From assembly GCA_965113315.1 (NCBI GenBank), contig OZ220374.1: a stretch of 64,000 nt of DNA. One strand, 5' to 3'. Of the stretch, positions 8,621 to 61,538 are shown piece by piece. The position numbers were made by a program, and so were the translations under genes. The DNA is from Podarcis vaucheri. Taxonomy: Eukaryota. A model generated the notes under the pieces. The model saw only the letters and a list, made by a program, of their open reading frames with translations, ran no database searches and was not told the origin of the DNA. Every line of letters begins with the position of its first letter. Within the stretch, counting starts at the first letter, position 1.

Positions 8621-9544
8621 ATAACTGTATATTGCAACAATAACAAATCTTGTTGATCTCTCAAAAAGCTAATCTTCAGGTAGCAGATGATGACAATGCT
8701 GGGGGATGGGACAGATAAGGTTGGCAAGCTAAAACACTTCTGTATACCAAGAAGCAAGTTCCACTGAGTACAATCTATTTTAAAAGTTTATTATTTAATT
8801 AGTTTATGAATCACTTCCCATGAATTTAAAAAAACAGTAGAAACCCTACATGAAAACTATTATAAAATATAAACGCAGTGAAAAACAACAACACCAGCAC
8901 ATACATAAAAATCAATCCAAACCTAAAGGCAAGATACTAACTTGGATTAAGGTTTTGGAAGGCTTTCTCTCAGGACATGGCCAGTCTACAACTCTCACTG
9001 CCCCTGACTATGTTCTCTGGGGCTGAGGGGTGTCCAGAAACAGGCTCCTTACACTGCAGTGCAGTATGACAGCATAAACCATTTAAAATCGGAGAGAGCA
9101 GCAAATCATCGCCTTCTCTAGAAATTGGGCCTAGTCTTTCCTGCTCATAGTTATGCTGGGGGGGGGGGAAGCAATCTGCTTCCAAACTAGGACTAACTAG
9201 GCCCCTTTTCTTTTTCTAGTCGTTACTAAAGGGGCTACGGCAGAGTCCTAGAAAGGGAGAGCTGCTGTTGCTCATCGCTCTTTTGTAAATAATTATTTAA
9301 AATTATTTAAACCGAGGGAAATGTGTGACCGAACTTATTTATTTGCGCGGGCCCAACGCCGGCCCTTTCAAACCACCCTTTCCTACGGAAGCCGCACGGA
9401 GGACAACCTTCCTGCATCAGCGGCCGTAAATGGAACAGCTCCCAGAGAGAGAGAGAGAGAGAGAATGTGCTAACCGCTACTAGAGCCTTCTGCGAATTCC
9501 TCCTCCCGGCCCCCACCTTCGCTCTCAACTCATGAAAGGGGCAC

Positions 9545-9832
9545 TGACGTCACCCGCTCACTCTCCGCGCGGCTCGCTTCACGTCACGCCGCGCCCCGCG
9601 CGCCGTCCCTGCCTCCGGGCCAATCACACGCGGAGAAGGTTACCGGCCTATTTCCACCTCTCCCTCTCTCCCTCCCTCCCCCTTCCCACAGCCTCTCTCT
9701 TTCGCCTGAGCGGAGGGGAGGAGATAGTGCGCGAGGCGTTTTTCGGGGAGGGGGGGAGAGAGGGGGCGAGTCTCCAGGCGTCGACCAATATCTTCCGCCG
9801 CCGGGGGAGGGACTTCCGCCCGGAGCCGGAAG
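9545..9832 (+). promoter_or_regulatory. Proximal promoter motif cluster: palindromic CRE, CCAAT boxes, ETS/GABP sites
   Basis: TGACGTCA 9545-9552, CACGTCA 9580-9586, CCAAT 9620-9624 and 9785-9789, CTTCCG 9813-9818, CCGGAAG 9826-9832. No TATA box seen. Confidence 0.6.
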
Positions 9833-9849
9833 CGGGGCTCGTGGGTCTC

Positions 9850-10331
9850 CCTGGCGCTCTCTCTCTCTCTTTCCCTCGCGCTCCGTCTCTCTCTCTCTCT
9901 CTCTCTCTGTCTCTCCCTCTCATATGCGAGCGAATTGTCTCCGCTGCTTCTTGGCGCCCAGAAGCCCCGGGGCCCGGACACCCGCCGCCGCCGCCGCTCT
10001 CTCTTCCTCCTCCCGCCTCTCCGCGCCCTTCCCTCCCCGCTTGTCGCTCCTCCTCCCCGCCGCCGCCGCCGCCACTCCTCCTCCTCCTCCTCCGCCTGGG
10101 CTCCGCTGCCGCCCCCCGCCGCCCTCTCTCTCCGTCTTTCTCTTTCTCTCTCTCACCCCTTCCTGGGATTCGGCGGCGGCGGCGGAAGAACGAGAAGGAG
10201 GCGGCGGCGGGAGACGAAGACGGAGGCCGAGAGGAGAAGCAGCAGCGGCGGCAGCGAAGGATCCCTCAGGCCGGCCTCCGAGCGCGATCCCTCCCGGCCC
10301 GCCGGGGCCTTGCTGGCTGTTGGCTTGACAG
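9850..10331 (+). other. LARP4B: LARP4B non-coding exon 1 (5' UTR); start approximate
   Basis: Strong donor CAG|GTGAGT at 10331/10332 inside the CpG island, downstream of the promoter motifs. The TSS cannot be determined from sequence. Confidence 0.7.
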
Positions 10332-10414
10332 GTGAGTGGAGGCCGCGTTCAGCAGCAGTCAAGTGGCAGCAGCAGGGCCGCCGCCGCCGCTTCCTCCCGT
10401 CACCGCCCCGAGCC

Positions 10415-10425
10415 GCCGCCATTTT
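10415..10425 (-). promoter_or_regulatory. YY1 consensus site at the start of intron 1
   Basis: GCCGCCATTTT (reverse complement AAAATGGCGGC). Confidence 0.45.
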
Positions 10426-12994
10426 CTCACCCGAGGCCGCTCGCGGTGGGGGGCGGGGCTGGCCGCTGCAGGGAACTGGCCCCGGTTTCGTGGCCTTGCT
10501 CCTGCCGGGAGCTCCGCACTGCGTCGGCTTCGGCCTGGTCGCCGGGAGGGAAGCGCTGGGCCCGGCGGCAACGGCGGCATCTTCACGTGTTTCGTTTCGT
10601 TTCCTTCTCCCTCCTACACCCTCGGATTTGGTGGGGGGGGGAGAAGGAGGGAGAGATCGCCCTTTTAAGTTGATCCCCGGCTGGCCGAAAACGGAGGACA
10701 CCCCACCCCAAGCGGCAAGCCAAAGCTCCCCTTCGCTTCGTTTCCTCAAGCTCCCCCCAAACCCCCACCGCCATAGTCCTCCTTGACTCACACCCTTATC
10801 TAAAGTTAGGAATTCAAACACACACGCCCTTCTTCCATACTTGCAATGGGTATGATTTAAGTGTGACAGGAGGGTGGCTTTCTACTGCTTTCCCAGCGTC
10901 TCCGGGCCGTGATTTTGATCATTTGGCGACTTTTGCCGAACTTTAAAGCAGGCAGTGAGTTTGCTGCTGTTCAGTTGAACGCGGAGGTCTAGGGGGGTCT
11001 TGTGTCTAAATGGTTGGCTCTCTGTAGCTCTGCATTTGAAAACATGGTGTGAGATCGTCTGGGTCTGAAGTTCAGTAGCTGAGAAGGTGGGAGTCTGAGC
11101 CTTCCTGATGGACTGAGGAAATATGTCAGTTCCGTGTACTCACTGCGATGAAGTGGATTGTGTGCTGCTGCTGCTTTTCTTTTTATTGCAAGTTCCATAC
11201 TTTTTGTGCTATTTATCCTAACCTAAGAGTGAAATGAGTTTTTGGAACTCTTATGATGATACTTCATAACTGCTCAATTCCTGCCAACTTTCATCACTGC
11301 ACAACCAGCTCAGCCTTTTGCTGCTGAGGATACTGTGTGCTGTATAAGAGCTGTAATAACAGAGCCATTTAATAGCCACTCTGATAGGTTTCCTGTTATG
11401 CCATTTCTGGTTTCATTCTAGTTTCTCTAATTTAGCCATTTCAGGTGGCAACTTAGGTCTGCGTTCCTGGATGCTATTCATTTTAATAACAGTTTTGCCT
11501 AATAACATTGACCACTGTGATCAAGAAACCTGTGGCCTGCCACAACTCTCATCCCTGATATCATTGGCAATGGTGACTTGGATTGATGGGAGTTGTGGTC
11601 TTCCAGATATTGATGGGCTACTTGTTTCTCTTCCATGACCTACAGACATTTGCTGAAAGTAAACTTTATGCAAATGCCTAGTCAACTGGTTACTCCTTTG
11701 AGGTTCTTGGGAGCTGTGACTTCAGCTTTTGTGTATAGATGTACTAACAGAGTACTTTGTTAAAATGCTTTTTGGACAGTAGCATGGTTGCAATCACAAT
11801 CTAGCTTGCAAATATGAGAGTAGGCAGTATGTTGAATGTGGCTCATAGAGAGTAAACTAGATTTTCCCCAAGGTATGTAAAGGATTTCCTGTTTTGGTGT
11901 AAACATGCTGCATTTGCATCATGGGGTGGATCCAGACTAAGTTGGTTTCATTTTGTTCTCAATGAAATCTGGGACAAATTAATAATGACTTTACATATGT
12001 CCCTTTGATTTAAGTGCCACTCAGGCTGGATTTAGCCTTTGTGTTGGACTGCCTGTCCAACAAATTCTCTGCTTTCTATCAATTGTGAAAGTTTATGAAA
12101 TAGATCCTTCTATCACAAGGCCAGAATTTTGGTTCAGGACCAAAGCTGCAGGGACAGCGAGATTGAATTTTGGCAACCTTGAGATACAGAAGGTGAAGCC
12201 TGAATATTTTAGTTCTTGGTTTGTGGCTCATATGGTCTGGTTTTGTTGGACTTCATCAGAAGACTAAACAAATTTGTACTAAAAGCCTTTAGTCTGTTCA
12301 GAGAAGGGAGACTACATGTAGCATCATTCCAAAGACATTTGCAAACCACTTCAATACAATTCTTACTTGTCTCTTCCTTGTGTCTCCATGGCTGGTGCTC
12401 TCTTCAAACTTTTCAGTGGAACCTAGAGGCTTTCTGGGTATCTTTGCCAAAAAAACCCCCACACCCCTTCAGTTTAATGTAAAACATCTGCTTATCTATT
12501 ATTATTATTTATCACCATTATTATTATTATCATTATTATCATCATCCCCACTCTCTCAAATAAAGCTGATAAGCTATCTAACTGTTGGACAAGCAGTAAA
12601 CACTTGTGCTGAAGCATGGACAGATCTCATTTGTTGCACCCCCCCCTCTTAAAAAAACAAAATCAGTTGACAATCTTTTGGTTTAATTTGTGTTTATATT
12701 CATGCAAACACCAAAATGCTGGGAAAATATGGCTGTTAAGGGCCACACCATTAAGACACATTAGGCAATATAGATATGGTATGGTACCCTTTTATTGTCA
12801 TCTTTCAGGCTTCACTATCTTCAAGCTGGATGGTTGTTAGTGGCCAGGACCCTGAAGATCATCAGGTCCGAGCCCCTGCCACAGATAAAGCATTTTGATG
12901 CATATTTCTTTTGGGTAGTTTAAGTGAGAGAATGGTCAGGATGAAGATTGCTGTTGTGCTGATGCCGGTATAATGTGGCAGAAGCAACATAATA

Positions 12995-35315: not shown

Positions 35316-35396
35316 ATGACTTCTGATCAGGACCCTAAAGTTGTGGCTGAACCGCAGGTGCAGCAAGTACAAGAAGTTAAAGATAGTTCTCATCTA
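35316..35396 (+). CDS. LARP4B: LARP4B canonical first coding exon (exon 35263-35396), MTSDQDPKVVAEPQVQQVQEVKDSSHL
   Basis: Polypyrimidine tract + AG at 35261-35262, ATG at 35316, donor CTA|GTAAGT, phase 0. Matches the recalled human N-terminus MTSDQDAKVVAEPQ...KDSAHL. Confidence 0.93.
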
Positions 35397-35849
35397 GTAA
35401 GTATCATGGCGAAGACTTGATAAATCTGAATGCATGAAAGTGTGGTTATTTTAGCCACTGTTCTATCCCCTGAATCTTATGCCTGCTTTGGGTAACTTGT
35501 GATACAAGTTATTTTCTGTATTGGTTCTGCAGCAAATAGAAGTCTTTTCTTGGCTCATTTCATTTAGTTGTGCTAAGCATATGAAACAGAAAGCAACCTT
35601 TCAGCTTTCTGGTTCTGCTAGTTATATTCATTCAAAGGAGAAGTTTTGTCATAGGTTCTCTTAGTCTAAAACAGGAATAAGCTACTGTGTGTAACAATTG
35701 TTTTTTTATATGCTTACTCTTTTGACTTTCTGCTGCACACACAGGGCTTTCATTTCAATAGCCAACAGCGTTAAGGGAGGTGTTCTGGAGTAGTAAAGTC
35801 CACAAAATGAAATTTGGATAAATTGAAATTATTACTATTACTATTGATT

Positions 35850-36696: not shown

Positions 36697-37986
36697 ACTG
36701 AATTAATTCAGCAAGGGCAGCTACTGGTGCAGAGAGGTGCTGGATGATATTTTATTGTTGCACAAGCCTTGTTGAGGACCTTTGCAAATGGCTTGGACAG
36801 CAGTGGGATTCTTTATTAACAATATCCCACCAAAAGCGTGGTGAAGAATATCTTGTGGTAATGGCAGATATTGGCTCAGCCAGGGGAATTAATATAGCCT
36901 GATTATCTTTCTCAGAACAAGCATCACAGTTCTCTTGGTTTAGGAAAACATAGGCTGGCCAAAAAATCTTTAGAGATCTGAACCTGCACATCAGGAAATA
37001 AGGATTCACACTCCCACCCATCTGTCAAATTTGGCCAATTGGGCAGGGCCAGATAAAAATCTGATCCCCAGAGCCAAAAATGTTCCTCATCCCTTCTGAA
37101 ACTTGTGGACGTTCTCTCTTTAGCCAGACTGAGGCAAAACCTGTTGGTTTTCCTAGTCAAGGTATGCCACAAGGAATGGTTTTTCTTTTGTGGACTTTCT
37201 CCTTCTCATGCCCATGTTTTGTGGGCAGAACTGAATTGTTTCGGACACATTCCCCCCCACCTGCCCCAGTTTGGGGCATCACATCGAGAAATTGAGGTGA
37301 ATCGTGTTAGTGCAAATGGTCATGTGAGAATAGTATGTAAATTACATGTTGGAAGTGGGCAAGCAGGATGGTCTTCATTGTTGTCTTCTCTCTCCTGCCC
37401 CGCAAAAAAATTAAAAAGCAAGGAATTACTGGAGCGGTTTTAATTTGCAGTACCTTTAGAATGAACTCTGAGGCTTTGAACTGTACTTTGGATAGAAAAA
37501 TCCTGTTGAGTCCCTAACAGAGTTTCCTTGTTCTATCAATTCCTAATTACAGCAAATTAACACGCAGTATTACAGTAGGTTAGGATGCATATGCACCCTT
37601 TTTTGTTATTCAGTTCAATATGGGAGTGGCTGCTCTGACAAGGCATTCATACATTTAGAAGGAGAGACAGACAGCTAAAGTTCTGAACACTTTCATTGTT
37701 TGGGAGATGAAAAAAATGAAGAAAATCCTCCAAATACCTAGTACAAGCCAGAAAAATAGATAGCTGAAAGTCACATTGTTTAGCATAATGCCGGCTTTAC
37801 ATAGAGGCATTTTAGGAACTGGGCTTTGGATTTTGAGTGGCAATAGCATATGAACCCCCTGCACTGTTTAAACAGTGCTATTTTTGGCATCTGGGTGTTG
37901 GCTTGTCTGCCCAGCAGCCTTGAAGTGAAGTGGGTATATGCAGTAAAGAGCTCACAGTTCCGCGACTTGTAAAAGGCAACATAAAA

Positions 37987-40900
37987 ATGGGTTGCTGTTT
38001 CAGTAAAGAACTCAACAGCAAGAATGAGAAGATGAGTCTTTTGCAAAAATCAACTGAAGAGGAGACGTTGGAAAACGGGATAAGTAAAACTTTAACTTCC
38101 ATTTTGGAGACCATGGAAAGAAAGGAGCTGCATGTAATCCAAGAGGCAGTTTCTGGAACACCTGCTATTCATAATAATTGCGTAGAGCCAGTTAAATATC
38201 CTTCAGGCCATTGTGCGGGGATCGCTGAAGGTGGCCACAACCCCAGTAGATCTTTTAATCTTTATCCACATAATGCAAGAAAGGTCTTGAATGGTTATGG
38301 CAGTTTACAAGAGTGCAGACGAATGGAAGATATGGATGGTGCTGAAAATCTTCCAGAAAGTAGCAGTAGTAATGTTCAATGTGTGAATAATGCAGGCAGC
38401 TACCATATTAATAGCAATAATGAAACAGGATCTACTGTAGCTGGAAAGCCATGCCGTTCATTTGAAAGTACTTCTTCATGTGTGCCGGTGGCTGTAAGCC
38501 AAGGAAGCATCTTCCCGAAAGCCTTAAGTACATGTGGAATAAAAGGCAAGCCAGTTATGGGTGAGTGCTTATTAGTGCAGGATGAAGTAGATTCTGTTAA
38601 AAGTAATTGTAGTGCAGTAGGTTCAGGTAGAGCAGACAGAGAGACAGCAGCTTCAAGCTTTGCATATCTTGATATTGACAGGCCCCGTATAAGTATCAGA
38701 GATGAATTCTACAGTATTTGTATAGTTGATGATGATCTGAGAATGGATCTAGAAGAAGGGCAAGTTATTGTGCACGGAGAGACTGCTTTAGAGGTAGAAA
38801 GTTCAGCTGTTCAGGAGATGTACAGTATGACATGGCCTGGGGAAAGTGGGAAGGAATTGTTAGTCCCGAAGAAGCCGGTTCAGGTGCCTGTTGACTTCAG
38901 TGCTCTGAAAGATGAATCTCCCAGTATAATAAAGGATAGTTTACTGATGCCAAAAAGTGAAATGGGGGTAAAAGCTCCAGTTGGCTTAGTGAATGGGGAT
39001 CACAGGTTAAATACTGACAGAATAGCAGCAGATGTGTTAAGGGCACAAGCACATGGCGAAGATCTTACTAAAAATAGAACCCAGGAAATGAATATGGTAG
39101 ATAGTAGTAGAATCTTTGTGAATGAATCACTTGGTGAAAACAATAATTCTCCAACACCTGTGCATTTGGAGAAAGGCATGAAATATTCTCTGCAATTAAA
39201 AAGCAGGACTCATGCATGGACTTCCTTTTTCAATAGTGAGAACAAATGTGTCACTGAAGGTGTAAAGTCTGAATCTAATGAAAATCAAAATACCGAAGGT
39301 GAAAACTCTAAACAGTTGTTGGGAAGCCTGAAGTTTTCATCAGAGTTTGAGGACACAACTGGTCATTTCCTCTCTGTAAGTCAAAATAACACAAAAAACC
39401 AAAGTCAGATGAATAGGCCAAACTTTACAGGAAGCACAAATGAATTTTGGAGAGTATCTGCCCGCAATGATAAGAAAATCCCTAACTTTTCTGAACAGTT
39501 TAATCCAGAGCTACTCCTGAAATATGAAGATGATTCTGATCTTGGAACATTCTGCTCCCATGGGGATCTGAGAGAAAGCACCATTAAAACACTTCCAACA
39601 TCAGAGAGTGTGGCTTTTGAAGCGGAAATACCCCATGTTTCAGAGCTTACCAGTTATGAAGACGGCAGCTTTATAAGGGCTGCTCATCAAAACCTGTCTC
39701 AAATAGATAACATACCTTCAGAGATGAGTGATTTGACAGAAGGATCATGGGGAAGCGAAGAGACATTAACTTTTTCTAAACCTCTTAATGTAAATGTAAA
39801 TGAATATGAAAGAATCCAAAATGAAAATTGCTTGGAAGTTCAAGTTCCACACAACCTCTCTAAAAAGGATGGCAAAACAAATGACTATTCCAGTTCACTT
39901 AACGAAGATAACAGCTGCTGTGTCTCTTTAGCACATTCTGAAGTGAGTGAGATGGATTTGAATGATGAACAATGCAAGCTATGGAACAAATGTACATTCC
40001 ATAGACTGGAAGATCAGCTGAGTGCAGGGACTGACCCTCACAAATTAATAGCAACTGCAGAAGAGCCTGTAAATGGGTTGAAATGGGAAACACACCATGA
40101 AAGGAAAACACATAGTGAAATAGAAACCAAGGCAGATTCTGAAAATTTCACTGTTCAAGATGACTGTATGTTAAATGGCAATAATGATCTAATGCAAAAA
40201 CTTAGAGTATCTTCAAATATGCAAGAGAGGCCTTTAGTTCTGGAGGAGTCTTTAAGTATCCTGCAGATTGATAAAGCTAATAGTCAGCTTGAAACAGAGA
40301 GACTTCCTGCATCAGTTGATGAAAGTGATGCTAGAAATGTAAAAATAGAAACTAGTCACACTGAGACATCGACCAGATCAAGGGGAGGGAAATCAGGATT
40401 CTACGGAAACAGCTCTTTACCCAAACAGAGTATAATGGAAACCATGTGCCCTCTTAGGCCTTTAAATTCTGAAGTTTCAATTCCCTGTGCAGATATATTA
40501 ACAGAAAATGCAAAGGACTCTGCTCCCCAAAACGGCCAGCAGAAACTGAACATTGAGGTGGAATGTGCTTCCAGATCAGATGCCAAAGACTCTCTGACTT
40601 GTACTGATGCAGTTGGGATTTGTATTGACCCCAAGCAGGTAGACAAATATGCTGCTACTCCTTCGTACGAAATACCTCTGGCCTCTGTTAACGATCAAGA
40701 ATGTGACCAAGGCAATGCAAAGCATGTATTGGATCTGATGGAAGATATATTAAAGGAATCTGATAACACACACAAAATGGATATGGGCGATTCCCAAGGT
40801 GATCCGCTTTGTCCATCTGCTCCACTAAGTGGTTTGTTTTCATCTGCCAAGTTTACAGATGATCAGGAATATCTGATGGGATATTTGTGGATTAATTCAT

Positions 40901-41061
40901 CTTTTAACAAAACGGATAGCTCATGCAGTGCTAGTGAGGCGCTCCAAAATGAAACTGGCGATGTGACCGTTCCTTCTTTTGAAATGGGAGGATACCCTTA
41001 CCAGTTGCTAGTACAACAAAACAGTGATATCTGGGGATGGCAAGATAGAGATGAAGGATAT
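37987..41061 (+). CDS. LARP4B: Putative alternative giant first coding exon of LARP4B (1,025 aa, MGCCFSK..., S/E/N/D-rich, probably disordered)
   Basis: Uninterrupted 3.1 kb ORF in an AT-rich intron. Strong Kozak aaaATGG, upstream in-frame TGA at 37921. Donor TAT|GTAAGT after exactly 1,025 codons, phase 0, compatible with the PAM2w exon at 43975. Confidence 0.8.
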
Positions 41062-42239
41062 GTAAGTATTTCACTATCATAATTTGATTCATCAGGCACT
41101 TTTGAAAAGAAGTTGCTGTAATCCAAGGTGAAGATTTTGATTTGATGTATGATATTCTAAAACTCCAGCAGTGTTTCCATTTGTTTGAGTTAAGCCACTG
41201 TCAAATGCTAAAATGGAGGCATACATAACAGCACATCTTGGTACCTGTGTTGTGGCAGGCATAGACATCTCTTTTGTTGCCTCTCACCCATCCATAGCCT
41301 CTGAAGGTTGCCACAAAGTTGATATTTTACAACTTACTGTAACGTTCTCCCTAAAACAGATTGGAAAAATGCTTGGGTTAAATTTTAATACATTATTGAT
41401 GAGCCGATTTTTATCATTGCTCAGAAGTTTGAACTGGGAAGTAAATAATTGTGTCCCTACACCTGCACTCCTATCTGAGAGCTGAAGGACGAGGATTTGA
41501 AAAAGCATCTTGCTACCATTACGTTGTAAAATTGCTTTTAGCCATTTGTGAGCGGTAGCTTTGTAACGGTGGTCGGGGTCTAATTGAGGGCACGTAAGTG
41601 AGCCTTACTCGAACACAGGAGGACTTACTTCTGAGTAGGCTATGTATGGGATTGCAGTGCACATGTCTAGTCTGGGCAATTCCCTGCTCCCCTAGCACTG
41701 TGTGTAGAGAATTACTGTAATGCTAACTTGGTTGCTGTAACTGCTTTGAACTTGGGCTGTTGCAGGATTTGCTGCCATGTTTCCATGTTGAATAGAGGGG
41801 TGCATTTCATTCATTTTTTTCCAGAGTTTCTTGGGGCACACCTAACTGTTGGAAGCTGGACAGCTCCAGCGCTCTTTCTCTTAATCCTTTTTTGGATTTG
41901 TGTTTTACTTTTCGTTACTGCCTCTGGCAGTGGCAGCAGAGCTCCTCAGTGGCAGCCAGCCAGCAATATTATGTCCCTGGAACATTGCTAAGCAAGAGGT
42001 AGCATTGTTTGATTGAGGCTGGGAAGACTATGGGGGGAATACTCCCAAGGCTCAAATCCTATGCCCTGCTAGGATTAAGCTCCATCAAACACAGTGGGAT
42101 GTGCTTCTGAGTAGACATGTGCAAGATTGCATTGAAACTGAGGAGGGGAGTCTTCATCATCACAAACTTCAGCTGGCTATCAAGGCCAGCCAAAACTCTG
42201 ATGGCCCCTGCCCTTTCCTAATGTAAAGGAATACATTTC

Positions 42240-42372
42240 TCATAGAATCATAGAGTTGGAAGGGACCCTGAGTCCAATCTAGTCCAATGCCCTCCAGTGC
42301 AGGAATATGCAGCTGTCTCTTACAGGGATCGAACCTGCAACCTTGGCATTGTCAGCACCATACCTACTGAGG
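42240..42372 (-). mobile_element. tRNA-Ile-like-headed SINE with CR1-type tail
   Basis: Reverse complement reads 'ggtgctgacaatgccaaggttgcaggttcgatccc' then 'ggtcccttccaactctatgattctatga'. Confidence 0.6.
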
Positions 42373-43974
42373 TATCCGAGCTTAGATTTGTTTCTAGGTT
42401 TGTTGCTTAAAAACTATAGAGCAATGATGTTTGGAGTTGTGCAGCAGTTATTACCGCTAGGGTTGTTATTCAGAGAGAGAACACTTGTCTTGTTATGTTT
42501 GTGGTTTTGTCTTTATTTTGAAAGGCAGGCAAGAGCCAAAATGGTCACAATTTATTGTGGAAATTATCCTAGACATAAATTGCTCATAGCGATACCAATC
42601 GTGCAAGCCTTAATTCTTCAAGGGAATTATTGTGTAAGGGGAATTGTTGCACAAATACACCCATCTTATCATAACCACATGATTAGAAGATTGTAAAGCA
42701 TGCATTGCAATAGGTAGCTAGTTCAATCATTTATGACATGATTGAAATCTAATCTTATAGGCCATCATCTTTGAGGACATTTTCATAGTTGTACAATATA
42801 AGCTATGAATCCTTCTTCATACCTTGCCTCAGCCCATGGGCTTGCTAGGGGGCCTTAAGAAAACTCGCATCAATCACTTTCCCCCTTCCTCTGTAGTAAG
42901 AATATGTTTGGACATTCCCTTACAGAACTGGTTCAAAGATTATGGAGTTAACATCCGCTTTTGATCTTGCCAATGCTTAGATTTACTTTTACCTTTACTA
43001 TGGCTCCTTTTTTTGATAATGTTTGTTTACTGCTTTTGTAAGCCTCATTCTTGCACACTGCTCTGGCACGGCACAACGAATGTTGCCATCTATTTTTGAC
43101 TAACCACAGCTTAGCCTTAAGTCTGAATCTGGACAACCTGCAGTTAATCTTAACTATGAAGCCTGCATTTTTTTTTTAGTAAACTACAGTTAAAATTAAC
43201 CACAGTTTAGGGCTCAGATATAACACTAAACTGGGGTTGTTGTTGTTGTTATTAATTTAAAAAAAACAGATAGAAGCTGCGAGTCTCCTCATAGCTACAC
43301 CCAGGCATGGGAGAGTGTGCAGATCCAAGGCTCACACAGGCGGCTCCTCCTAATGCTAAATCATGGAGGGAGGTAGCGCATGAATGTCATACTTGCACAG
43401 GCTCATATTGGTAACACTACAATGTGATTTAGTGTAACCATGTGAATGTAGCCACTGTTGAAAACCACTTGGATGTCTCCATTTGGTGGGAAAAGTGGAG
43501 TATAAATCTGATCATAAATATAAATGAAGCCTGGGTGGTAACTTTCATAAATGGAGCAGAGCTTTCCTGACTCCTGCTACCTCCTGCAGCTTCCTGTGGT
43601 CTCATCCCAATTGAGTTGGGTCCTTTGGGAAAGGTGTAAGATTATTTTTGGGTGGGGGGACGACTGCTGATGGAGGAGAGACTTGTCAGAAATACCTCCT
43701 TACAAGAGTACAAGAGAAGGAGAACAACTTGGAATCTAAGACAATTGATGTTACTTCTTTGAATATTCCAAAGAGCTATACAAATGATAAATGTGGATGA
43801 ATTTGCCTTGACAAGTAATGTAGGTTGAGTTTACATAAGCACCGAATGGCCTCTAGCCACAAGACCTCTTATTCCACTGCTGTATATCTTTTAACCATTT
43901 GTGGGTTGCATTTATAATAAGGAACCACGTAAAATTACAGGCATTTAGAGCGTAACCCAATTGTTATTTCCTAG

Positions 43975-44122
43975 GAGTCGGCCAAGGTTTCTGAACTAAA
44001 TCCTAATGCAAAAGTATGGGGGAATCATATGTTACATGTGGAAGCAAGCGGGGCTAATGATGGCGGCGTGAGCAAAACCTGGGAAGAAATAGCAGATCAT
44101 CCACCAGATTCCTGCAAAGAAG
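43975..44122 (+). CDS. LARP4B: LARP4B exon with variant PAM2 (PAM2w) motif ESAKVSELNPNAKVW
   Basis: ctag|GAG ... AAG|gtacga, 148 nt, phase 0 to 1. SELNPNAxVW is the LARP4-family PABP-MLLE binding motif. Confidence 0.95.
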
Positions 44123-60615: not shown

Positions 60616-61413
60616 AGCAGCCCTGTGCAGTGTCCTGCCTGCTGAATAAAGCATTCTCACTAATCCCTTAAAACCACTGCCGAGGGTTAGGGGTCATGCA
60701 GAGTGTGGTGTGGCACAGATGAAATCAGCATACAAAATAAAGGCCAGCATCCAACCAACTTGTTCTGCCAGCGCAAGCATTTATGCTCATGCAACAGAAC
60801 TTTCCTCCCTTCTTCCTCCTGCTTGCATCTGCACCCTCTCCAAATCTGCGCTGGGATTGGAGGGTTGGAGGAAGGCCAGATTTAGAGGGCGCTTGTTCGC
60901 ACAAGCAGCGTTCTGCATCCCAAACCAAACAATTCCTTAACTTGTTTTGAAATCTCTGGAGCTATTGCTCTAGGTCAGTGGTTCTCCAACTTCTTTCTCT
61001 GGGCCACACTTTCAGAATAAATATTTGCTCACGCCACACCAATTTTTTTATTGGTAAGGAATACATTGGAAAACAAAAAGGAACCACTCCTAGCAGTGCT
61101 TGATTTATAACATAGAACACAGCTGCTTTATAATATGATCATGGGGCATCCAGAAAATATAAAACAATGCAGCGACATAAGAACATGAATCATTCCCACA
61201 CACTTGATGCTCTTGCTCTCTTTTTGAAAAGATATCTATCGATAGTCTGGAAATAAAAATATTTTGATACGATACTATACTACACTGAAATGTTTAACTG
61301 TTTCTTGGTCTCTGTTGGAATCTTTTTTGCAAGTCTGCTTCTATAAAGGCTTTGAGTGTATGTTGCCTTGAGTTGAAATGCATTTGAAATGACCCGAAAT
61401 TTGTTTTCTTCAG

Positions 61414-61538
61414 AACCTCAGCGCGACTACTAGTACAAACACTATTCCATCAGGAGTTCCTCGAGAACCTTTGTTGCCAGTTTCTCCTCCTCTACCCGGG
61501 ACGTTTGAAAGGTCTCCTTCCCCATCCCAGCCTCCTGA
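61414..61538 (+). CDS. LARP4B: LARP4B exon (NLSATTSTNTIPSGVPREP...FERSPSPSQPP)
   Basis: tcag|AAC ... TGA|gtaagg, 125 nt, phase 0 to 2. Confidence 0.9.

Follow-up and report, generated by a model that had tools for sequence, protein, structure and literature searches.

The window analysed here (one strand, 64,000 nucleotides long, of contig OZ220374.1 in the assembly GCA_965113315.1 of the lizard Podarcis vaucheri) carries the gene LARP4B on its plus strand. The canonical product of this gene is a protein of about 725–738 residues, comprising a PAM2w motif, a La motif and an RRM, which binds PABP and RACK1 and promotes the accumulation and translation of mRNAs. An exon map drawn with tblastn places its coding sequence at 35316–35396, at 37987–41061 and from 43975 onward to 63335. 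The first of these segments is the coding part of the canonical start exon, 27 codons (MTSDQDPKVV...SSHL) that end in phase 0 before a GTAAGT donor at 35397. The third begins with the PAM2w exon (43975–44122; it reads ESAKVSELNPNAKVW...), followed by about 12 further LARP4B exons. The second, which lies on the same strand and separates the canonical ATG exon from the PAM2w exon, is a giant exon of 1,025 codons, 37987–41061, counted from its ATG to the last codon before its donor. An initial annotation of the locus, made from the letters alone, had taken it for an alternative first coding exon. We find it probable that this is what it is: a genuine first coding exon of LARP4B, inherited from the ancestor of bony vertebrates, which would be spliced to the PAM2w exon and would supply the protein with a tether and a membrane anchor.

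A single open reading frame of at least 150 residues is listed within 37000–42000; it spans 37930–41082 on the plus strand, and its first ATG is that of position 37987. Translated from there, the 3,075 nucleotides up to 41061 give 1,025 codons and zero stops, as had been claimed, while the remaining frames across the same interval hold 77, 126 and 52 stops. Under the local base composition the probability of meeting no stop over 1,025 codons is 5e-33. The runner-up among stop-free stretches in the entire window has 352 codons and lies inside a GC-rich CpG island at about 9.5–10.7 kb. The ATG stands in the strong Kozak context that had been ascribed to it (AACATAAAAATGG, with A at −3 and G at +4), and the AT skew of the exon (+0.11 to +0.17) differs from that of its flanks, where it is about 0 or negative. 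Self-comparison of the window found no similarity touching the exon and no second copy of it. The absence of a repeat insertion, part of the first description, thus holds; for the repeat-rich character attributed to the intron around it the signs are mixed: self-BLAST reveals little of it, but RNA reads pile up on high-copy fragments at about 41500–41699 and 42240–42363.

The boundaries are equally well defined. Immediately 3′ of codon 1025 comes a GTAAGT donor (41062–41067), in phase 0 like that of the 27-codon start exon; translation carried through the donor would terminate six codons on (VSISLS*). The acceptor common to the two start exons, ...ttatttcctag before 43975, opens on the complete codon GAG, and together with the phase-0 donor this makes a phase-compatible, in-frame join. 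On the 5′ side an in-frame TGA (37921–37923) closes the frame upstream of the ATG. The AGs that end at 37943, 37957 and 37975 would start an exon 43, 29 and 11 nucleotides 5′ of the ATG, all three out of phase. These were the features from which an alternative N-terminus had been proposed; every element stood, with one correction, the end of the PAM2w exon, which is 44122.

A small oddity lies just upstream. Nineteen codons 5′ of the ATG and in the same frame, positions 37930–37956 (plus strand) resemble a degenerate copy of the start of the exon: GTG GGT ATA TGC AGT AAA GAG CTC ACA (V-G-I-C-S-K-E-L-T), to be compared with ATG GGT TGC TGT TTC AGT AAA GAA CTC AAC (M-G-C-C-F-S-K-E-L-N). The copy has no ATG and lies 3′ of the in-frame TGA; it may have arisen by a minor local duplication or be fortuitous.

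The protein databases hold many relatives of this exon. A word-indexed search through 5.8 billion proteins brought up 69 of them, to which a profile search against 1.84 billion representatives added more. The top match is an uncharacterized protein of Podarcis muralis (96% identity), and the remaining matches among the 69, some of them at E = 0, come from squamates, turtle, crocodile, bird, platypus, opossum, bat and axolotl. The profile search added naked mole-rat, takin, camel, Xenopus, Pelobates, Pleurodeles, coelacanth, spotted gar, zebrafish, catfish and bonefish. Intact orthologs of about 940–1,190 codons are thus present in squamates, turtles, crocodile, birds, monotreme, marsupial, placentals, amphibians, coelacanth, gar and teleosts, reaching down to 19–35% amino-acid identity; no cartilaginous fish figured among the names of relatives that were looked up. 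With orthologs from fish to mammals, the exon must be at least as old as the bony vertebrates.

Many of the 69 relatives bear the name 'la-related protein 4B isoform X2' and have about 1,790 residues. Closer to our species, a 'la-related protein 4B isoform X1/X2' of 1,724 residues is on record (NCBI, ENA) in P. lilfordi (CAI5789029.1) and in P. muralis (XP_077792889.1), with counterparts of 1,722 residues in Zootoca (XP_034985272.1), 1,838 in Danio rerio (XP_021325871.2) and 1,914 in Latimeria (XP_064410713.1). Corresponding long forms are found in the annotation of birds, turtles, platypus, opossum, naked mole-rat, takin, salamanders, Xenopus, coelacanth, gar and zebrafish. Residues 1–1025 align with 37987–41061 at 96.8% identity in P. 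lilfordi, 95.4% in P. muralis and 91.4% in Zootoca. Beyond residue 1025 all three continue at 43975, and the 1,724-residue Podarcis isoforms map exon by exon to the PAM2w exon and the later LARP4B exons. They span the junction 41061|43975 and bear out the product of about 1,724 residues, with the architecture that had been proposed. Pfam recognizes the La domain (PF05383) at residues 1146–1202 of the P. muralis isoform, where the matching exons of the window are 97–100% identical.

As a gene model, then, the giant exon is already known: the expectation that automated annotation might list it is borne out, as predicted isoforms of many vertebrates, two congeners included, are on file with NCBI, ENA and Ensembl. 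These share with the window the exon, its MGCCFSKEL start, the junction to ES(A/T)KVSELNPNAKVW and the downstream La module, and the Podarcis models also match in total length and in architecture and are 95–97% identical over the exon. The public records are computational predictions devoid of functional description, and none is identical to the sequence of the window. A literature search found no paper describing a long, lipidated or alternative-promoter isoform of LARP4B.

Evolution has preserved the way in which the exon ends. Across bony vertebrates, an exon running from MGCC to WGWQ is annotated as joined to ES(A/T)KVSELNPNAKVW, and the arrangement ...W-x-W-[QH]-x(5-6)|ES(A/T)KVSELNPNAKVW recurs in more than 30 annotated proteins. 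In the ortholog models that are left unspliced at this place, all go on with V-S, the translation of a GTNAGN donor, and then diverge into unrelated tails of varying length. This common V-S tells us that a GTAAGT-type donor and its phase are conserved, while the read-through tail is not.

A divergent paralog present in euteleosts (Anabas, Menidia, Antennarius, Hypomesus, Fundulus and Corythoichthys) is relevant here, as each of its listed isoforms is of the long MGCC form. The proteins in question (P0203, P0136, P0144, P0207, P0135 and P0137), mostly annotated as 'uncharacterized protein LOC...', start with MGCCFSKELNPGLQ... and carry VDPxQIDxYASTPSYEIH, VWDWH and a PAM2-like NP[ED]AEVW; a La domain was found in each of the four members scanned (P0203, P0136, P0207 and P0135). 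That all the listed isoforms are long suggests a duplicate of LARP4B specialized for the anchored form. Several predicted long isoforms of birds and mammals (P0036, P0052, P0053, P0039, P0085 and P0161) display another peculiarity: they are 150–300 residues shorter, with internal gaps in the giant exon, which suggests intra-exonic, exitron-like splicing within the disordered region.

Conservation along the exon is concentrated in a few islands. The first 27 residues make the top one, with a mean column conservation of 0.72 as against 0.33 overall, and MGCCFSKEL opens all full-length orthologs; that the N-terminus is the most conserved part fits initiation at the ATG of 37987. Within the N-terminal anchor motif itself (MGCCFSKELNSKNEKMSLLQ, residues 1–20, 37987–38046, of the form MGCCFSKEL...E-x-x-x-L-L), M1, G2, C3, C4, F5, E14 and L18 are invariant in an alignment of 33 sequences and retained in fish, while S6, K7, E8, L9, K15 and L19 are conserved in at least 90% of them. 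A second motif, DEFYSICIVDDDL (FYSIC-x-x-D-x-x-DL, residues 239–251, 38701–38739), is found from teleosts to mammals, with F241, Y242, S243, C245 and D248 invariant in the same alignment. It superficially resembles F-x-x-I patterns akin to those of LC3-interacting regions (LIR), as well as phospho-FFAT-like patterns (FFAT standing for two phenylalanines in an acidic tract), and we draw no claim from it. Further on come DPKQVDKYAATPSYEI (DPxQVDxYA[AS]TPSYEI, residues 881–896, 40627–40674), kept from fish to mammals; VLDLMEDIL (residues 914–922), more weakly conserved; and EYLMGYLW (residues 961–968, 40867–40890), shared by tetrapods and coelacanth. Finally, YPYQLL...IWGWQD (residues 1003–1020, 40993–41046), again kept from fish to mammals, ends five codons before the donor, and YPYxLL...W-x-W-[QH] is placed five to six residues before the end of the exon in all lineages.

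The extension as a whole is predicted to be fully disordered. AlphaFold 2 (AF2), run on the 33-sequence alignment, gives a mean predicted local distance difference test score (pLDDT) of 35.5, with 1,018 of the 1,025 residues below 50 and neither helices nor strands, in line with the 'mostly disordered' extension of the initial annotation. The composition is of the same kind: 60% of the residues are S, T, N, Q, E, D, K, P or G, the region is rich in Ser, Glu, Asn and Asp, and its net charge is −69. Pfam, its LAMTOR model included, matches no family at E ≤ 1 over the whole exon; in the PDB no chain matches residues 1–40 at E ≤ 10, and the profile search yields nothing credible. The sole PDB match, a PHACTR1 chain, was dismissed at E = 0.32, and the best score in the ESM Atlas, 0.76, is below any useful level.

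What would the first residues do? MGCCFSK fits the consensus of N-myristoyltransferase substrates, with G2, a small residue (C3), S6 and K7. Cys3 and Cys4, invariant in the 33 sequences and in all the fish orthologs aligned, are candidate palmitoylation sites. An acidic dileucine, [DE]xxxL[LI], follows as E14-K-M-S-L18-L19; in an alignment of 25 sequences Ambystoma, Menidia and Antennarius have L-I at this place, which still fits, and Xenopus has L-F. Judging from these consensus patterns, the most likely modifications of the N-terminus are N-myristoylation at Gly2 and palmitoylation at Cys3 and Cys4, and the long form probably ties the mRNA-binding LARP4B to a membrane via this fatty-acid anchor.

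A precedent comes to mind. LAMTOR1 (p18) starts with Met-Gly-Cys-Cys and has an acidic dileucine within its first 20–25 residues or so, the very combination met at the N-terminus of the giant exon. The first 39 residues of LAMTOR1, with the acidic dileucine and the palmitoylation and myristoylation sites, are enough to target fusions to the lysosomal surface (PMC7039192). By analogy, the membrane to which long LARP4B would be anchored may be that of late endosomes or lysosomes. Neither Pfam (at E ≤ 1, with the whole exon) nor the PDB (at E ≤ 10, with residues 1–40) gives any homology to LAMTOR1, so that the anchor is to be seen as an analog, not as a family member. Dual acylation of the MGCC type, taken alone, is also found on proteins of the plasma membrane and of the Golgi. 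Other proteins couple an mRNA-binding module to a membrane surface: AKAP1 does so on mitochondria, and ANXA11 tethers RNA granules to lysosomes. The parallel is one of function, since the proteins and the anchoring chemistry are different, and we know of no organelle-anchored RNA-binding protein of this kind that is a La-module protein.

The scenario that emerges can be spelled out as follows. A transcript lacking the canonical ATG exon, because it starts inside intron 2 or skips exon 2, would have its translation initiated at 37987; the 1,025 disordered codons would be translated, and the donor at 41062 would be spliced to the PAM2w exon at 43975. The product, of about 1,724 residues, would keep the entire PAM2w-La-RRM module. 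Its extension would act as a long flexible tether carrying short linear motifs, and its lipidated N-terminus would fix the poly(A)- and PABP-binding module to the cytosolic face of a membrane. Compared with canonical LARP4B, the long form would share all exons from 43975 onward and swap 27 N-terminal residues for 1,025 disordered ones bearing a lipidation motif. The LARP literature describes solely the short form, whose N-terminal region, up to and including PAM2w, spans about 71 residues (PMC7928011; PMC4693254). That PAM2w-La-RRM binds PABP and poly(A) or AU-rich mRNA comes from the LARP4/4B literature as cited in these two papers (PMC4693254; PMC7928011).

RNA from a congeneric species allows a first look at expression. 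Three bulk RNA-seq runs (X17 to X19) and one run in the form of Logan contigs (X1), taken as RNA because it holds a spliced LARP4B contig, were considered on 38100–44099. The PAM2w exon is covered at a depth of 10–20 in the raw-read runs and of 39.7 in X1. In X1, 8 of the 15 bins of the giant exon are covered, at a depth of 1–3.4, while the non-repeat intron bins of 41100–43899 are at 0; in X19 the depth is 0.5–0.9 over 38900–40099, in the same orientation as LARP4B. This is about 5% of the depth of the PAM2w exon in two runs, and it indicates exon-restricted sense transcription at roughly 5% of the level of the gene. The loose ends that stop before 43975 (X18 and X1) read the final bases of canonical exon 2, which confirms the canonical junction.

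Several observations weigh against the reading we favour, and they are best considered together. No read or contig joins 41061 to 43975 in X17–X19 or in X1, at exon depths of 0–0.9 and 1–3.4, and the sole junction seen into 43975 comes from canonical exon 2. The single X1 contig that reaches the donor (40919–41080) extends 19 nucleotides into the intron unspliced; coverage this thin speaks neither for nor against the splice, but leaves room for an unspliced or differently terminated transcript. The giant exon has zero depth in two of the three bulk runs (X17 and X18), so that the isoform would be rare or tissue-restricted in the sampled material. Inside the exon, X1 differs from the window at eight listed nucleotides, seven of them nonsynonymous and one synonymous, whereby amino-acid constraint outside the motifs appears weak. 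The remainder of long LARP4B is unrelated to LAMTOR1, the likeness being at the level of the motif only. Lastly, the giant exon is annotated as a gene of its own in Rhineura (LOC133364994, 1,049 residues with its own C-terminal tail), Molossus (LOC118623906) and Pelobates (LOC134608218), and Ensembl has a stand-alone model of 1,044 residues in P. muralis.

These separate annotations lead to the alternative that survives best: a nested gene, starting in intron 2 of LARP4B and ending soon after the giant exon, with a product of about 1,031–1,049 residues and no La module. Its 3′ end would come either from reading through the donor (VSISLS*) or from an alternative terminal exon of small size, and the fused isoforms would be chimeric predictions. 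The unspliced end of the X1 contig and the missing junction reads would suit it. So would the 19-residue tail of the Ensembl model, which is open in the window after a 107-nucleotide GT...AG mini-intron: on the plus strand, within 41062–41228, removal of 41062–41168 leads to QCFHLFELSHCQMLKWRHT*, the C-terminus of that model. Against this stand the donor, its phase 0 and its distance from W-x-W, conserved from fish to mammals, whereas neither the length nor the sequence of the tails is constant. In the mini-intron, the tract before the acceptor is weak and rich in purines. The 2.9-kb intron that follows the exon (41062–43974) contains neither AATAAA nor ATTAAA, so that a stand-alone transcript would lack an evident poly(A) site within the intron. 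Moreover, fused models arise independently in dozens of species, and the La-containing isoforms of the euteleost paralog are all long. We therefore hold a nested gene to be unlikely as a replacement for the fused isoform, with the proviso that the two products are not mutually exclusive and may coexist.

A cassette exon, read from the canonical ATG of exon 2, is highly improbable. Such an exon would be well placed between exon 2 and the PAM2w exon, with both neighbours in phase 0. Yet a stop, the TGA of 37921, interrupts the frame, none of the three AGs would join in phase, and the two other frames are blocked by 77 and 126 stops, which refutes a cassette using any acceptor 5′ of the ATG; besides, all full-length orthologs begin with MGCCFSKEL, their most conserved island. 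The alternative N-terminus ahead of an intact PAM2w-La-RRM is thus supported by the upstream TGA and phases, by the MGCC starts and by the annotated isoforms alike.

The rate at which the exon changes has to be discussed together with the last rival, that of a decaying or non-functional relic, or of a frame derived from a transposon or a virus, open in lacertids by chance. In a neutral simulation (substitutions without indels) the frame of the giant exon survives 5% substitutions in 0.4% of the copies and 10% in none of 3,000. The exon has 2,444 nonsynonymous and 631 synonymous sites, and the 7:1 ratio of the X1 differences rules out an omega of 0.2 or less (p = 0.015) and is compatible with an omega near 1, as far as eight differences from a single RNA run can tell. 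The giant exon is 95–97% identical to that of other Podarcis, and most of the downstream exons that align cleanly are 96.5–100% identical, with lower values against the Podarcis models for 61411–61521 (94.6%) and for the last exon (about 87%). The picture is that of a fast-evolving disordered region in which stops are strongly selected against and a handful of short motifs are likewise under strong selection. A relic can draw on an amino-acid change within Podarcis of 3–5% over the exon versus mostly 0–3.5% on most downstream exons, on the seven nonsynonymous differences out of eight, on very low expression and on the lack of a known domain, but the frame is open in each lineage examined over hundreds of millions of years when 5% of neutral change is enough to shut 99.6% of the simulated copies, five motifs show no or next to no variation, and neither Pfam, PDB profile nor Atlas searches match the exon to a transposon or viral protein – the match that would have spoken for a mobile element – nor does the window hold repeat copies, so that this rival was rejected as scarcely credible.

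Two other parts of the locus deserve a word. The CpG-island promoter of LARP4B, with its non-coding exon 1 region, lies at 9500–10750 on the plus strand (GC 0.68–0.73), and a P. lilfordi model aligns by tblastn to 10171–10329 within it. Open reading frames of 200–350 codons overlap the island on both strands (9474–10881, GC about 0.7), and one P. lilfordi model of 782 residues begins translation there; these frames look like GC-rich, stop-poor artefacts or 5′ untranslated region rather than genes. Within the intron, the fragment 42240–42363 (and also about 41500–41699) reaches a depth of about 140 in X17–X19 and, taken as a sum, of more than 2,000 in X1. Both the fixed differences and the loose ends, which are consistent on either side of 42240–42363, show the source of these reads to be a strongly expressed copy at another place, and the fragment is probably part of an interspersed repeat. 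Behind 42363, the flank read resembles the reverse complement of a tRNA A-box region; ARAGORN (for tRNAs) and Rfam find nothing in the window copy over 41400–42700.

We return to the first exon with its putative lipid anchor and to what it would mean. To our knowledge, LARP4B has been studied solely as a cytosolic, stress-granule-associated factor of about 80 kDa which binds PABP, RACK1 and AU-rich or poly(A) mRNA. What gives the exon its value is an uncharacterised and deeply conserved architecture that would combine a lipid anchor with a tether; for annotation it is also a warning, as the giant exon is filed as a separate 'uncharacterized LOC' gene in several species. If the long form is made, a fraction of the cell's LARP4B would be membrane-bound, which would bear on the stabilization and translation of mRNAs at the surface of organelles. 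It is tempting, and we do so tentatively, considering the idea possible but doubtful, to go further and propose that all bony vertebrates keep a lipid-anchored LARP4B, where a LAMTOR1-like signal and a tether of about 1,000 residues put PAM2w-La-RRM on endolysosomal or other membranes. Were this true, FYSIC-x-x-D-x-x-DL, DPxQVDxYA[AS]TPSYEI and YPYxLL...W-x-W would be docking sites for partners, and vertebrate cells would possess a dedicated mRNA-to-membrane tether for the local stabilization or translation of mRNAs.

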